DNA from: Thecamonas trahens ATCC 50062
Lineage: Eukaryota; Protista; Apusomonadida
Direction of reading: 5' to 3'
NCBI RefSeq assembly: GCF_000142905.1
Contig: NW_013657659.1
Location: 1-64,000, forward strand
DNA: 64,000 nt
The position numbers and the translations under genes were made by a program. Under the pieces are notes generated by a model. It saw only the letters and a program-made list of their open reading frames with translations. It ran no database searches and was not told where the DNA came from. Position 1 is the stretch's first letter; each line of letters opens with the position of its first letter. Positions 8,769 to 15,926 of this stretch are shown one piece after another.

Positions 8769-10501
8769 GTATGGCTGATAGAGGCAATGGTATGACTCCT
8801 GCCAATGAGCTTGCTCAGATCAACTCGCTCATGGCTGGCTCGGATTCTATGTATGGTGCTGGTGCTGGTGCTGGTGCTGGTCTCGGCTCGCCCTATCGTC
8901 ATCCGTCTGCTGCTGCTGCTGCCATGGCTTCGTCGTCGATGGCATCGCCGCCTCCAGCACCTTCGCCGGCCTCTTTCCTTCGGTCGTCGTTGCGAGGCGA
9001 TGCCCAGTTCCGGTCGTCCGACTACGTCACGCCGCTGGCCTCGTCGGCCGTTCCGCAGTCCAACTCCAAGGCAGTCATCTCGGCGCTCACCGCGCTGCAG
9101 CAGAAGATCAGGCGGCTGGAGCAGGACAAGGCGTACTATGAGGAGAACGCAACGTCGCTGAAGCACGAGAAGGAGACGTACAAGCAGATGCTCGAGCGCG
9201 AGCGCGCCGAGCTGCAGGCCCAGGCTGCCGCCCGCGAGAGCCAGCTCCGCAAGCAGAACCAGTCTGTGGAGACGACCCTCATGACGGCGCAGGAGCAGAT
9301 GGAGGCCATGCGCCGCGACCTCGACCAGCTGCGCTCGCGGGTCAACTCGGCCGAGTCGGAAAAGACCTCGCTCGAGCGCGCGCTCGCCGAGTCGAACGAG
9401 CGTGCCCATCAGATCTCGCAGCAGGCCGCCAACGAGTCGTTCGAGTCGTCGCGCCGCCTGCAGGAGCTCGAGCTCAATCAGGACATCATGCGCGCCGAGA
9501 CCGAGCGTCGCCTGCGCGAGCTGCAGAACTCTATCGTGGAAGAGCGTGAGAAGGCCAAGTCGGTGCTCGAGACTAGCGCCAAGACCAAGCAGACGCTCAA
9601 GCAGGTGCTCGACGTCAACGAGTCGCTCCTGGCGCGGGTGGCTGCGTCGGATGACGACGATGATGATGACGACGGCTCGTACGCCCGACACAGCCGGGTC
9701 CGGACCGGCCGCCGGCGGACGGCCTCGCGCAAGGGCTCGCGGGCAGGCGGCCGCCGGCCGCCGTCGGGCGCGCGCCGCCGCTCCGGCTCACGGTCGGCTT
9801 CGTCGCGGCTGCTGCGCCCGACCGCGGCATCGCGGTCGAAGCGCCGCTCCAAGAAGGGTCCGCGGCCCGAGCTGCCGTTTGTGGTCGGCAAGTCGGCCGG
9901 CAAGTCGTTCTCGGTCACTGCTAACATGCAGCAGGCCATGTCGCTGCTCAACGAGATGGAGCCCGTCGTGTCCGAGATGCGGGTCATCGACGCGTCGCGT
10001 CGCGAAGCCGAGCACCACGCCTCGCACTCGCACTCGCACGACGGCGGCTATGGCGGAGGCGGCGGAGGTCACAACGACGCCACCGGCACCGGCGGCGAGG
10101 CCGCGTCGGCGTCGTCGGCTCTCAACACCTCCACGCACTACTTTTCGCACCGCGGCATCGACGCCACCATCTCCTCCCTCGAGGACGAGTTCCAGGGCCT
10201 CTCCGACCGCTACCACGCCATGCGTGCCAAGCTCGAGGACCTCAACTCGGAGACCCCCATCGATGAGCTCAACACCATGCTCCGCTCCACCATCGACAAG
10301 ATGGAGCTCCGCGGCGACCAGATCAAGGCTCTCAAGCGCTACCGCCGCTCTGTCGCCCGCACCCTCGAGGCCACACACTCGCAGCTCGACTTTTATCGCG
10401 TCCTCCTCGAGCAAGAGTCACGCCACCATGCCACGCCGCTCAAGATCCTCCGCGGCATCCAGCAGCTCCAGCGCCAGCTTCGCGGTGAGGAGGAGATCTA
10501 G
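8702..10501 (+). CDS. CEP57: Centrosomal protein CEP57/translokin-like
   Basis: N-terminal motif AVISALTALQQKIRRLEQDK followed by coiled coil, central LPFVVGKSAGKSFSVTANMQ, and C-terminal LEDEFQGLS...MELRGDQI microtubule-binding motif, all typical of Cep57. The ORF upstream of ATG 8702 is low-complexity UTR-like sequence. Confidence 0.85.
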
Positions 10502-10782
10502 CCATCTGACTGACCTGTAGCCCGACAATGAACCCGCCATCAACACATCCTTCGACCCAACGGCTTTAGCTACGGCATCATGCCATCACGACTGGTCGCT
10601 TCTCACTCGCGTTGGCGCGAGGGTGGTCGGCAGTCGGTGGCCAGAGCGGTCGGCAGTCGGCGGTCGGCGGCTTTCGTCAGCAGGCACAGCCACTTGACGA
10701 CCGACAGCGCCACCTCGTACTCTCAAGCCACACACACACACACACACACACACACAAGGGGTACATCAATAGCGAGCTATTC

Positions 10783-10882
10783 NNNNNNNNNNNNNNNNNN
10801 NNNNNNNNNNNNNNNNNNNNNNNNNNNNNNNNNNNNNNNNNNNNNNNNNNNNNNNNNNNNNNNNNNNNNNNNNNNNNNNNNN
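10783..10882. other. Assembly gap (100 N)
   Basis: Run of exactly 100 N. Confidence 1.
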
Positions 10883-11440
10883 CTCCTCCCTCGAGGACGA
10901 GTTCCAGGGCCTCTCCGACCGCTACCACGCCATGCGTGCCAAGCTCGAGGACCTCAACTCGGAGACCCCCATCGATGAGCTCAACACCATGCTCCGCTCC
11001 ACCATCGACAAGATGGAGCTCCGCGGCGACCAGATCAAGGCTCTCAAGCGCTACCGCCGCTCTGTCGCCCGCACCCTCGAGGCCACACACTCGCAGCTCG
11101 ACTTTTATCGCGTCCTCCTCGAGCAAGAGTCACGCCACCATGCCACGCCGCTCAAGATCCTCCGCGGCATCCAGCAGCTCCAGCGCCAGCTTCGCGGTGA
11201 GGAGGAGATCTAGCCATCTGACTGACCTGTAGCCCGACAATGAACCCGCCATCAACACATCCTTCGACCCAACGGCTTTAGCTACGGCATCATGCCATCA
11301 CGACTGGTCGCTTCTCACTCGCGTTGGCGCGAGGGTGGTCGGCAGTCGGTGGCCAGAGCGGTCGGCAGTCGGTGGTCGGCGGCTTTCGTCAGCAGGCATG
11401 GCCACTTGACGACCGACAGCGCCACCTCGTACCTCTCAAG

Positions 11441-11498
<58 letters not shown>

Positions 11499-11523
11499 GG
11501 GTAACATTAATAGCGAGCTATTC
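10883..11523 (+). repeat. Near-identical duplicate of 10171..10782 (CEP57 3' end and 3' UTR) across the gap
   Basis: Sequence after the gap restarts at CTCCTCCCTCGAGGACGAG (= position 10171). Differences cluster near the contig end and in the (CA)n length. Probably an unmerged contig overlap. Confidence 0.9.
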
Positions 11524-11532
11524 CGGAGCAAT

Positions 11533-14500
11533 ATGCGAGTGTGGGGAGTGGTGTACGGGTGGCTCTGTGTGGCGCTGATTGTCAGCAGCAGCAGCGGTAT
11601 GGCATATGCAAGGTGTACTTCGTCGGAGGAATGCGACAGCGAATCGGTGTGCGTTCCATCGGCTGGAGGATGTATACCATTGGTATCTGTCCACGCCCTG
11701 CCTCAAGCACATGCATACTTTGAACCATGGGCTGGTGTCTTTCTCGCTGTTGCTATTGCGCTTGTTTGCTGTTGTGCTGTTCTTCTTCCTCAACTCTCTT
11801 CCTTTGGTATCAACTCTTGCTGGCCTCATCGATGGGCAAGAGTCCGCACCACGGATGTGGCTTGGTGCGCAACCATGGCTATCGTTGTCGCTACTGCTGC
11901 ATTTACTCTCGCTCTATTGGTCTTCTCTTCTGCCATCGTCGATGATCCGCTACCGCCTCTGGCTACCGCTCAGCATGTGCCAGGAACCAACTGTTCGGTC
12001 CTGGAAGACGAGACGTGCTCCCCGCTCAAGTGCGATACTCGCCTCTCAACCTGTCTCGCCGCCTGCACCGCTGACTCGCATTGTATGGTGCCCACACGAT
12101 GCCACACTCCGACCGGTGAATGCATTATCGACATGCGCTCGCCGTCCGTCCCGGGTGTGCGGAAGCGGCTTGTCTCTCCGTGGGTGGCCGCTTTTGTTGC
12201 CATTGCCGCCGGCGGGCTCATCACCGCGATTGCGCTCGTCGTCATCATTCTATACGCCTACTCGCGGACTCATCCGATTGTCATTCTCGGCCTTGCGCTC
12301 CTCATTGGCCTCACCGTAGCAACCACCATCGGCGTCTCGCTGGGGACCCGGTCGGTGGCGATTACCTACCCGCTGGCACCCAAGTCGATCCGCCCGACAC
12401 CGCGGGCTCCGCCGCCGCCACCTGCACCCGGCCCGCAAGCGCCGCCGCCGCCGCCGCCGCCGCCGCGCCCGCTCCCGGTGCCGTGCAAGGCGTCGCCACC
12501 ATGTGCGCCATACTACTGCGCCATGGGCACCGGCTTTTGCTTTGACTACTGCGCCGAGAACGACCACTGCATTAGCGGATACAAGTGCGAGGGCGATGCC
12601 TGCGTGCCCGAGTCGCACGGAACGACCGGGCTGGAGGAACCATCGGTCCGCCCGCTGGTGGCGATAGTCCTCGGGTGTGTCGTTGCCCTCACCATTTCGT
12701 CGTGCATGTTCTGCATTCTGTACACCTTGTCGCGCCGGCGGCATGGCGGATACGTTCCGCGATCGCGGAGCCGTGGCTTCCGGCTCATTGCCGGCTCGAT
12801 CTGCATGCTGCTGGCGGTGGTGGTGAGTGGGGCGCTTCTGGCGATGACCGTGCCTGTTGAGCCGCCTCTAGCTTTCGACCCGACCAACACGACTGCTGTC
12901 CACGATGGCAGCGGCAATGGGACGCTGGCCGCGGCCCGGCCACCGCTGTGCGAGGTGCTCCGCGCCGACGTGTGTGCGCCATATGTGTGCGACCTGCGGG
13001 TCTCGGGCTGCTTTACCACGTGCGACGTCGACGACCAGTGCGTGGCGGGGACGACGTGCTCGGGTGGGGCGTGCGTGTCGAACACCGAGCCCGGCAAGCT
13101 CTCTGCACGGCGCTACCCGGCGTGGCTGGCCGCGAGCATCGCGGTTTCTGCCGGCGTGGTGTTTGGGCTTGCCGTCCTCGCTGCTGGCTGCGGGCTATGG
13201 CCAGTCTCACTCCGGCGGCCGCTGCATGAGCTGCGGGCCAACGCCGATGTGTTTTTGGCGATTGTGGGGCAGGCGCTTTGCTGCTTTGCCTTTGTGGTGT
13301 TTGTGGTGGGCATCACGCTTGGCGTTCTCGTCACCTCGCACAATCCTCTGCTGGCAACCTCGACCGAGCGGCCCATCGCTGCAGGCGGCCCGGATTTAAC
13401 GCCACGTGCAGTTATCTCCGCGACCCGGCGTGCTCGCGCTTGGGTTATCTGTGCGACGTTCGTGTGGCGGCGTGCTTTCCGTCGTGCGAGTCGTCGCTGG
13501 AGTGTGCGCCGGAGCACGGGTGCGAGCGTGGCGCGTGTGTGCGGATCACGTCGCAGCAAGCGGTCAAACCGCTGCTAGGATCTGCGGTGACGGTGCTGGC
13601 GGTGGTGGCTCTGGTGGTGGTGGTGGTGGTGGCGACGGCGTGGCTCGGCCTCGGCGCCAACTGCGCGCATCGGATCATGTATGGGATTCCGCTGGAAAAG
13701 TCGGCGGCGCTGGTGGTGGTTGGCCTCGCCGCAGGCCTGCTCGGGCTTGTGGTCATCGGGCTGCCGGTCTCGTACGCGCGCAGCAAGGTCGAGCTCCCGC
13801 AGTCGCTTCCGCGATCGCCGCACGCTGTGTGCGGGCCGCGGCCAGACGACTCGCGTTGCTTTCCATACGCGTGCGATCCGCATGCAGAGCGGTGCCTTGT
13901 GGGCTGCCAGACGAACGCCCACTGCGTGACCGGCAACCTCGAGCAGCCGCACCGATGTGCTCGCGATGGGCGATGCGTGGCCGTGTCCGGCTCGACCGCG
14001 ATTGGAACGCCTCAGGATGCGTGGGGTGTGGGCGTGGGTGCCACAGTTCTCACAGCTCTGGTGCTGGTGTTGGTCCTCCTCCCGCGGTGCCGGCGGTTGT
14101 ACCTTGGCTACCGCGCCCAACGCGAGGAGCAGGTTCGGACCGCGCGACAGGAGGCACTGTCAGAGGAGATGGCCAAGTTTGCCGACGTGCCGCCGGCGAT
14201 GCTTGACGTGGTGCCGGGCGGGAGGCGCGCGAGCGAGGAGGGCAGCGAGGATAACGAAGAAGGCGAGGCCGACACTGCCAATGATGTTCCTCTTCAGGTG
14301 CTCGAGTCGATGTCGCGGTCGAGCGCGAGCGACGAGAGCGCAAGCGCGAGCACAACGAGCGACCACAATCTGCAGGTGTGTGTTGCAGCAGAGGCCGGTG
14401 GGGTAGGCCGGCTGTCGGCTGGCACGACCTCGAGCTCTTTGCTCAGCCGCGACGAGGCAAGTGTGGCGCCTGCACCCGAGTGTGTGGTGTGCATGTTTGA

Positions 14501-15758
14501 GGCCGGACAGGTGCAGCTTGTGGGGCCGGGAGTGTGCGAGCACTTGCTCTGCACCGAGTGCGCGGTTGGGACGCTCAAGGCGGTGCTTGATGCGGGCCAG
14601 TTTCCGGCTGTCTGTCCGGGCTGTCTCGCCGAGTCTGGCGCGTCGATGCGGCCCAGAGAGCTGCCGTTGGCGCAGCGCGTAACCGCCGACGCGGTGGAGG
14701 CGCTTGTTGTCGCGGGGGCAGTGGACGAGGACTTTGCGCGGCGGTTCATCATCAACATGGTGCTTGCGGCGCTTCCGTCGACAGAGACGATCTCGTGTCC
14801 CGGATGCTCACTGCTGAGCTTGCGGCCGGGGCGGGAGCAGCCCGAGGTTGCGGCCAAGCTTGCTTCTAGCTCTGCAGCGATGCGCGCGCGGGCGACGGCG
14901 GCCGAGTGCTGGCACTGCAAGGCCGAGTTTTGCGGTGAGTGCGGCATTCTGTGGGCGGGCCATCGTGGTGTCTCGTGCACAGAGGCGGCAAACGGCCGGG
15001 GTGGGCGGATGGAGGATGTGGCGTCGCGGGATCTTGTGGTAGCGACATCCAAGCCGTGTCCCAACTGTGGGGCGCCTGTAGCACACGCGGCGTTCCACGC
15101 CTGCCACCACATTACGTGCGCGTGCGGCTACGGGTTCTGCATCGTGTGCCTGGAGCGGCATCCTTGCCCACGCGAGGGACACGGGCTCTTCTGCACCTCC
15201 GGCTGCGACTGCGTGGTGTGCTACGAGTGTCGCCCAGGCGCGCCGTGCCCAGCCTGCCCGGGACCGCCCAACTGCCCGGCGTGCGATCCGCGCGGGCCCA
15301 ACGCGGCACGGCTGCCCGAGGGTCACCCGTCTCTGCGGATTGTGGAGGAGCAGGAAGCAGCGGCGGCAGCGGCGGCAGAGGAGACCGGAGTGACCGCGGA
15401 CGGCGCGGCGCCGCCGCCGCCGCAAGGCGATGCCAATGACCCGGTGCGACTCTCGTTTGCGCAGATGCTCCTCACACTCCGCGAGCTGGTACAGAACCTG
15501 CAGCGGCCGGATGCGCTGGCCGGCGGTGGCACTGGCGACGAAGAGACCGGCGACGGCAACGCCGGTGAGCCCAATGAGGCTGGGCCGTCGATCCCCCCGA
15601 ACAACGGTGTGACACGTACCGACGAGGAGCAGCTGGCGCTTGATCAGTTCCAGGCCGTCACTGGCGCGCCGCGCATCTCTGCGCTCCGCCTTCTCCGCAT
15701 CCATGGCTGGGACGTGACCGAGGCCGTGGATGGTTGGTTTGAAAGCGGCCGCGGATGA
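11533..15758 (+). CDS. Polytopic membrane protein with repeated extracellular Cys-rich modules, RBR (RING1-IBR-RING2) E3 ligase and C-terminal UBA-like domain; one -1 frame break near 13392
   Basis: ORFs 11533..13578 and 13278..15758 continue the same [8-Cys module + TM hairpin] periodicity across ~13392. RING1 CVVC..CEHLLCTEC..CPGC; IBR CPGC..CWHCKAEFCGEC..H..SC; RING2 KPCPNCG..ACHHITCACGYGFCIVC; UBA-like LDQFQAVTG..ALRLLRIHGWDVTEAVDGWFE. Confidence 0.85.
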
Positions 15759-15926
15759 TGAGCTCAGCTGTCTGCAAAGTAACACGCACGTCTCCCCTCT
15801 CTCACTCTCTTCTGTTGTTTGGCTGCCTGTCTGCTGCCACTGCCCCGTGTGTGGTCGGTCGGCCGACCGAATTGCCACGACCGCTCGCACGCCACGCGAC
15901 TCGACTCGCGCCAGCTGTGGCTGGGC

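Follow-up and report, generated by a model that had tools for sequence, protein, structure and literature searches.

A predicted polytopic RBR-type E3 ubiquitin ligase with repeated cysteine-rich ecto-modules in the apusomonad Thecamonas trahens

Thecamonas trahens ATCC 50062 is an apusomonad flagellate. We analyzed a 64,000-nucleotide stretch of its genome (the window), which has a G+C content of 60–67% and contains CA repeats, and here describe positions 11533–15758. This stretch corresponds to the gene AMSG_04998, as shown by a protein match of its downstream frame to AMSG_04998 at 99% identity. The + strand of the stretch holds two long, overlapping open frames, at 11533–13578 and 13278–15758. 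These were searched separately as piece A (11533–13386, 618 residues) and piece B (13389–15755, 789 residues), and were combined, with an X placed between them, only for numbering the loops. An earlier note, made from the sequence alone, had proposed that both frames belong to one gene for a receptor-like E3 ligase. In our reading of the sequence, 11533–15758 is probably (a probability of about 0.72) a single intronless gene encoding a polytopic, membrane-anchored RBR-type E3 ubiquitin ligase of approximately 1,408 residues. The predicted layout comprises a signal-like start, a half-module of four Cys, five modules of eight Cys each, 11 helices, an RBR domain, a Cys/His cluster, and a UBA-like domain.

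The gene begins with a start codon and a signal-peptide-like hydrophobic segment (residues 1–24; 11533–11604), which was recognized by hydropathy and aligned with the signal-like N-termini of a family of homologues described below, and it ends with a stop codon at 15756–15758; all features lie on the + strand. The signal-like segment is followed by the half-module (11614–11673; C-x5-C-x5-C-x6-C, Cys 28, 34, 40, and 47), and an S-C-T-S...C...C...C element stands at this place in all family members. Helices were called by a hydropathy scan with a 19-residue window, which detected a signal-like segment at residues 6–24 and eight helices in piece A, and three helices in piece B, none of them after residue 238. 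Helices 1 and 2 (11731–11925; about 11731–11787 and 11869–11925, with hydropathy peaks of 2.92 and 2.35) are separated by a short basic loop and precede module 1 (11992–12123; Cys A154–197), which has a sequon just before its first Cys. Helices 3 and 4 (12196–12333) lead to module 2 (12484–12603; Cys A318–357), whose first loop is short, as in module 2 of every family member. Helices 5 and 6 (12664–12840), for which loop counts were also used, enclose a 21-residue loop with 7 Arg/Lys and are followed by module 3 (12949–13074; Cys A473–514). Module 4 (13407–13538; Cys B7–50), with an N-A-T sequon before it, lies behind helices 7 and 8 (13126–13353; helix 8 at about 13276–13332, peak 2.88). After helices 9 and 10 (13584–13763) comes module 5 (13830–13976; Cys B148–196), which has a longer seventh loop, and then helix 11 (14025–14081; hydropathy and loop counts), a basic stretch, and an acidic low-complexity linker. 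Exactly two helices thus stand between consecutive modules, and one last helix precedes the cytosolic part. The signal peptide, half-module, five modules, and approximately 11 transmembrane helices listed in the earlier note could all be located from hydropathy and Cys positions.

We then considered the topology that follows from this order. The number of helices between modules is even in all six homologues, either two or four and never one. Loops were numbered from the signal peptide onwards in six members, and this placed all 8-Cys loops on the exposed side and RING1 on the other; P0006 was out of register in this count only because its signal segment fell below the threshold. In the window protein, Lys and Arg account for 15 of the 93 residues in the five short loops, compared with 38 of 524 in the six module loops, an enrichment that agrees with the positive-inside rule. 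Many modules, among them modules 1 and 4 of the window protein, have an NxS/T sequon immediately ahead of their first Cys. As judged from the sequence, the half-module and the five 8-Cys modules are predicted to lie on the face first exposed by the signal peptide, which may be extracellular or lumenal, and the short basic loops together with the whole C-terminal part (RBR, Cys/His cluster, and UBA-like domain) are predicted to lie on the opposite, cytosolic face. The helix parity of the six members agrees with the earlier placement of the RBR on the cytosolic rather than the lumenal side. The second helix of many pairs (12277–12333 and 13276–13332 in the window, and the even-numbered helices of the paralogues) ends in a small-x-x-x-small pattern of the G-L-x-L-G-L type, such as L-A-L-G-L-S-L-G-L in relatives, which hints at tight helix packing or self-association.

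Downstream of helix 11, piece B encodes the predicted catalytic part. RING1 (C3HC4; 14481–14624) follows the pattern C-x2-C-x14-C-x-H-x2-C-x2-C-x17-C-x2-C; its eight ligands are invariant in the family alignment, and the profile aligned it with RING1 of ARIH1 and ARIH2. The ligands of the IBR (14796–14978) are also invariant, and this domain aligned with ARIH1 and RNF216; in the homologue P0004, the Pfam IBR family passed its threshold (33.8 versus 24.3 bits). RING2, or Rcat (15057–15149), was placed by alignments with parkin RING2, RNF216, and ARIH1, and contains a putative catalytic Cys at 15102–15104 followed by His-His. This Cys-His-His stretch (15102–15110) is invariant in the family, and A-C-H-H aligns with G-C-N-H of ARIH1. 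In the family profile, the putative catalytic Cys aligned with Cys357 of ARIH1, and the His two residues later was aligned as well. A single-sequence search of the RBR stretch against solved structures retrieved RNF216 at E 2e-4, in an alignment that spans the IBR and RING2 and extends past them, and RING2 of parkin at E 7.5e-4. The family profile matched ARIH1 over the whole of RING1-IBR-RING2 at E 4.4e-9, and also matched ARIH2, HOIP, parkin, and RNF216. All RBR zinc ligands are invariant in five members, and the window protein keeps 60 of the 68 cytosolic residues that are invariant in the other members, including 35 of 35 Cys/His. By every sequence feature tested, the catalytic part belongs to the RBR family, and the RING1-IBR-RING2 with a catalytic-type Cys proposed earlier was recovered with invariant ligands and a profile alignment to solved RBR ligases.

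Two further elements follow RING2. Directly behind it lies an additional Cys/His cluster (15165–15284), which is conserved in the family. Most of the cluster lies within the RNF216 alignment, which reaches residue 266 of a 280-residue query; few residues match there, and a gap interrupts the alignment midway. The C-terminus carries a UBA-like domain (15636–15749), which matched Pfam UBA_4 (PF14555) at E 1.5e-9 with 38 bits against a cut-off of 21.8. The match corresponds to residues 787–824 of the downstream frame, and UBA_4 was also found in P0002, P0003, and P0004; in addition, the family profile matched the UBA structure of FAF2/ETEA (2dam) at the C-terminus. The extra Cys cluster and the UBA-like domain had both been noticed earlier, and family conservation of the former and the above-threshold Pfam score of the latter bear this out. 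In the region between these two elements, a metatranscriptome contig (X2, at 15276–15482) has 9 gapped positions in the Ala-run/low-complexity linker, which probably reflect a repeat-length difference between strains.

The window gene is not alone. A full HMMER scan with piece A retrieved long relatives (P0002–P0006) at E 1e-22 to 2e-12, among them the T. trahens paralogue AMSG_04901 (P0002, contig 19; E 1e-22) and three marine environmental proteins, of 1,489 residues (P0003), 1,333 residues (P0004, with seven near-identical members), and 1,172 residues (P0006, which ends at a contig end). A six-frame genome search located paralogues on contigs 19, 46, and 50 (C19, C46, and C50), where they form single open frames of 1,383–1,906 codons with no stops. 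The genes for P0003 and P0004, both uninterrupted, come from metagenome contigs of a single Tara Oceans sample. The order of parts is the same in every member: signal-like start, S-C-T-S half-module, helix-separated 8-Cys loops, last helix, RBR, Cys/His cluster, and UBA-like domain; P0006 ends within RING2 at the contig end, and the later parts fall outside its sequence. Two helices separate the 8-Cys loops, and in C19 and P0006 there are four with a short loop. The window protein matches the family in the order and counts of its parts (half-module, five units, last helix, RBR, cluster, and UBA-like domain), and its N-terminus, read from 11533, aligns with the family signal peptide and half-module. 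Colinear end-to-end pairs were formed by C46 and P0004 (36%), C19 and P0006 (33%), and C50 and P0003 (38%). Two of these three paralogue–environmental pairs are well supported in the tree, and the pairings suggest that the paralogues predate the split from the environmental organism. The literature that we searched contained no description of a multipass layout of Cys modules with an RBR, in line with the earlier impression of an unrecognized architecture; this layout is not unique to AMSG_04998, however, but defines a small family. Word-index searches with the downstream frame returned only itself, those with the family alignment returned none, and those with the RBR region of P0004 again returned only itself. 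Two metagenome loci from an RBR-pattern scan were without helices or modules and were placed outside the family.

The modules themselves were examined in an alignment of 23 copies from five family members. The eight Cys are all invariant, Pro-Tyr/Phe is common before the third Cys, and the module formula given in the earlier note, C-x(5-8)-C-x-(PY)-x-C..., holds in this alignment. Using the 23 rows, AlphaFold2 predicted a confident small fold for module 3 (mean pLDDT 85, core >90), which includes a short helix and, at the C-terminus, a hairpin. Foldseek gave no significant match to this model: the rows returned had E values of 1–10, probabilities up to 0.41, and 19–29 residues covered, and the top ones, none significant, were draxin, Dkk4, and knottin inhibitors/toxins. 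VIA-align with the same model gave no match at Z ≥ 2. At the sequence level, the module profile matched knottin toxins weakly (E 0.016), and Pfam DUF7107 had sub-threshold matches in 10 of the 23 modules (best E 0.0058), with its gathering threshold of 24.6 bits not reached (12.8 bits for module 3 of the window protein). Every Pfam match of the modules stayed below the gathering score, and the module is without a named family. DUF7107, the knottins, and the Cys-rich domains of Dickkopf and draxin are the closest small, disulfide-rich domains for comparison, but no match to them was significant. For 16 of the 23 modules, the best match in another family protein was the module at the same ordinal position, suggesting that the five-unit layout predates the divergence of the family. 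This pattern fits the earlier proposal that the protein was built in tandem from a unit of helix pair and module, and on these sequence comparisons the five-unit build would be old within the family.

The reading of one continuous protein depends on how the two frames are joined. The frame break falls in a run of C residues (13387–13391), with 13386 the last position of piece A and 13389 the first of piece B. Here the assembly has CCC and an independent contig CCCC, and the frame changes within GGC GGC CCG GAT (13384–13395). The earlier note had suspected a frame change somewhere in 13300–13500. It is present there and could be narrowed to a one-base event in the C-run at 13389–13391. A contig from an independent public run (X4, 13095–13507), colinear with the genome, has one extra C behind 13388, and with this C, piece A continues exactly into piece B as Gly-Gly-Pro-Gly-Phe-Asn-Ala-Thr-Cys, the beginning of module 4. 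The extra C in this contig is supporting evidence, short of proof. A local alignment of pieces A and B with the module 3–module 4 stretch of the homologues was confounded by repeats. We conclude that the frame change is most likely a one-base undercall or a strain difference in the C-run and is probably not an intron. The earlier view of a single gene gains from both lines of evidence, as the extra C joins the frames and helix parity puts the modules and the RBR on opposite faces.

The public model of AMSG_04998 crosses the break in another way, by removing 13251–13384 (134 nt, GT..AG), and it starts 201 codons late, at an internal Met near 12136. If this model were right, the gene would contain a real 134-nt intron and encode a protein of 1,163 residues in which a single helix separates module 3 from module 4. 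The model stands in the public record, its GT and AG boundaries restore the frame, T. trahens genes are generally known to contain introns, and none of the RNA reads spans the intron site at 13251–13384. However, the removed stretch is open, strongly hydrophobic coding sequence in frame with the upstream exon; it encodes helix 8, whose hydropathy peak of 2.88 is among the strongest in the protein. Its deletion would make modules 4–5 and the RBR swap membrane sides, leaving modules 4–5 cytosolic and the RBR outside, unlike in all six homologues. Moreover, the paralogues, as well as the environmental relatives whose DNA was read, are uninterrupted at the corresponding place, a one-base variant accounts for the frame change without splicing, and the public start omits the conserved signal peptide, half-module, two helices, and module 1. 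Both the intron and the late start look like artefacts, and we regard the public model as very unlikely to be correct.

A second explanation is that the frameshift is real in the reference strain, so that the gene is broken and encodes a membrane protein of at most 681 residues without the ligase, either as a recent pseudogene or as a strain polymorphism. The assembly does have CCC at the break, AMSG_04998 is the fastest-evolving family member, no orthologue of it was found, and the CCCC contig differs at other bases and may represent another strain or an error. On the other hand, the intact invariant residues downstream of the break (the 60 of 68, with all 35 Cys/His) argue against decay, and piece B runs through 789 codons with no further stop. 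The downstream half is also matched by contigs from RNA libraries, and the neighbourhood is of draft quality: approximately 2.5 kb upstream of the break, the copies of a 100%-identical duplication lie on either side of an N gap. A broken gene is therefore, in our assessment, unlikely. Joining of the frames by programmed −1 ribosomal frameshifting at or near 13387–13398 appears extremely improbable. A −1 slip after the Gly codon at 13387–13389 would yield the same protein as the extra C, but neither C_GGC_CCG nor G_GAT_TTA (13392–13398) obeys the X_XXY_YYZ rule for tandem slippage, frameshifting is needed in no paralogue or relative, and a DNA-level variant was seen at exactly the break position.

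Metatranscriptome contigs from three marine runs of two studies match both halves of the gene, at 12525–12901 and 14213–15795, at 99% or more; DNA carry-over may account for such matches to AMSG_04998. Several observations weigh against an intact, membrane-spanning ligase gene. Hydropathy is the sole basis of the helix calls, and an AlphaFold2 model of the membrane/ecto part of P0003 (900 residues) had a pLDDT of 51 and was set aside as unusable. Pfam at E ≤ 1 detected no RING or IBR in the window protein; the RBR assignment is based on the family profile. The X4 contig has a depth of 2 and two further nearby base differences from the assembly, and the kind of run is not recorded. Among the RNA contigs matched, none crosses 13250–13400, and the nine single-base differences in matching contigs (six changing the residue, three synonymous) are uninformative as to purifying selection. 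Finally, the window gene stands alone on the longest branch of the tree, at 3.84 changes per column, and no environmental orthologue of it was found.

The module core also recurs outside the family. It was found in a two-module secreted protein on a bacterial contig (P0007/P0027; E 9e-6), in a GH18 protein (P0008/P0022) that has a C-terminal anchor and carries the core three or four times in tandem, and in four Cys-rich, lipoprotein-like frames of approximately 1,140 residues (L022–L025) from metagenome-assembled genomes, two labelled Polyangia bacterium and two uncultured proteobacterium. The shared core, C-x-P-[YF]-x-C-[DN] ... C-x3-C-x5-C-x5-6-C-x4-C, stands in tandem in secreted or surface proteins. 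The earlier note had guessed that look-alikes of the module might exist in myxobacteria, and its presence in the Polyangia lipoproteins answers to this guess. All of these outside relatives are extracytoplasmic, which fits the topology of the window protein. Compared with the window protein, the Polyangia lipoproteins and the GH18 ecto-protein have the module core in common but lack helix pairs between the repeats and lack a ligase. A scan of genome contigs with P0007 found nothing. The four lipoprotein-like frames received no Pfam or NCBIfam name, except for one sub-threshold DUF7107 match; they have a lipoprotein-like start and are built almost wholly of several kinds of Cys-rich repeats. 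On two contigs with dense short genes on alternating strands, a gene for a GH18 protein with three tandem modules and a C-terminal anchor (L020/L021:6001–7488) adjoins a second GH18 gene. A 540-codon open frame on contig 22 (L015:1875–3494, G000) encodes one 8-Cys module and, behind it, one hydrophobic helix, without an RBR pattern; its product may cross the membrane once and share this module.

We next compared the protein with known ligases. RNF144A/B, RNF19A/B, and RNF217 share with it a membrane-tethered RBR catalytic unit. In all of these, the one or two helices are C-terminal to the RBR, and an ectodomain is absent. In the window protein, by contrast with RNF144, RNF19, and RNF217, the RBR comes after all eleven helices and the five and a half Cys modules, and the hydropathy scan found no hydrophobic segment after RING1, that is, no counterpart of the C-terminal transmembrane segment of the animal membrane RBR ligases. 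RNF144A/B combine the RBR core with a transmembrane domain (PMC7458406). ARIH1/HHARI and ARIH2 gave the best profile match over RING1-IBR-RING2, with the catalytic Cys and the His aligned. The Ariadnes are soluble and have an acidic or UBA-like N-terminal region and a C-terminal Ariadne autoinhibitory domain, neither of which was found in the window protein. Of the solved structures, RNF216/TRIAD3 was the one best matched by the single sequence, in an alignment that covers the IBR and RING2 and reaches the Cys cluster. The zinc-binding extension of RNF216 RING2 recruits acceptor ubiquitin, and zinc insertions after RING2 in RNF216 and HOIP recruit the acceptor and set the chain type (PMC9834252). 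RNF216 differs in being soluble, and the match in the extra cluster, which is short and gapped, does not show a shared origin of the extension. With RNF43/ZNRF3 and the PA-TM-RING proteins, the window protein has in common the idea of an ectodomain coupled across the membrane to an E3 for neighbouring membrane proteins. Those proteins are single-pass, with one folded ligand-binding ectodomain and a plain cytosolic RING that involves no thioester step; they differ from the window protein in enzyme class and build, and there is no sequence relationship.

If the window gene encodes the predicted polytopic RBR ligase, its mode of action can be outlined from RBR biochemistry. RING1 would recruit a charged E2, and ubiquitin would pass to the RING2 Cys as a thioester and from there to a substrate held close to the membrane, namely an adjacent membrane protein or the ligase itself. 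The zinc cluster after RING2 may position the acceptor, by analogy with the insertions in RNF216 and HOIP, and the UBA-like domain may bind ubiquitin. The same protein might act on an internal membrane (ER, Golgi, or endolysosome) in the quality control or turnover of membrane proteins, with lumenal Cys modules that serve structure or chaperone contact rather than ligand sensing. We regard this as a real, if tentative, possibility: the well-known polytopic E3s Hrd1, Doa10/MARCH6, and the MARCH family act on internal membranes, and the sequence does not distinguish the plasma membrane from a lumen, the topology being equal either way. Two observations, both weak, speak against it: the relatives of the module occur in secreted or surface proteins (the bacterial secreted protein, the Polyangia lipoproteins, and the membrane-anchored GH18 protein), and the four diverged paralogues have faster-evolving ecto parts, a pattern more usual for surface receptors. 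More speculative, and unsupported by the present results, are the earlier suggestion of a ligand-sensing ligase at the cell surface for the recognition of prey or pathogens and, beyond it, a new receptor class, in which the ecto-modules would bind an external ligand and a rearrangement of the helix bundle would switch on the RBR; we consider such a receptor class doubtful. In it, the helix pairs would arrange the five and a half modules in a ring or row, and candidate ligands would be a bacterial surface glycan or a prey cue. If true, a signal would cross the membrane directly by ubiquitylation, and the four paralogues could be tuned to different ligands in a bacterivorous flagellate.

RBR ligases have been studied mainly as soluble, autoinhibited enzymes that are switched on by cytosolic signals, and the few membrane-bound ones are simply tail-anchored. 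A conserved family in which eleven helices and an outer face of repeated disulfide-rich modules stand before the RBR would represent another way of connecting a thioester-forming E3 to a membrane, possibly one that links it to the outside world, and would allow the idea of an RBR controlled by its ectodomain to be put to the test. The predicted protein also exemplifies a polytopic protein built by repeating a unit of helix pair and ecto-module, and the module seems to be common to this family and myxobacterial surface proteins.

At least two family members, AMSG_04998 and AMSG_04901, appear to have a wrong start in their public models, and that of AMSG_04998 also seems to contain an invented intron. 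The model of AMSG_04901 (L014:2084–7801, G000 contig 19; P0002, 1,718 aa) starts 188 codons inside its open frame, downstream of the signal-like segment and half-module shared by the family, and its start looks mis-annotated in the same way as that of AMSG_04998. Upstream of the window gene, within 10171–11523 of the window, a 300-nt stretch (10171–10470) recurs at 100% identity 712 nt downstream (10883–11182), across the N gap at about 10783–10882. Each copy is followed by a (CA)n run, and the repeat duplicates the 3' end of the upstream coiled-coil gene; this duplication looks like an artefact of a local assembly of draft quality.

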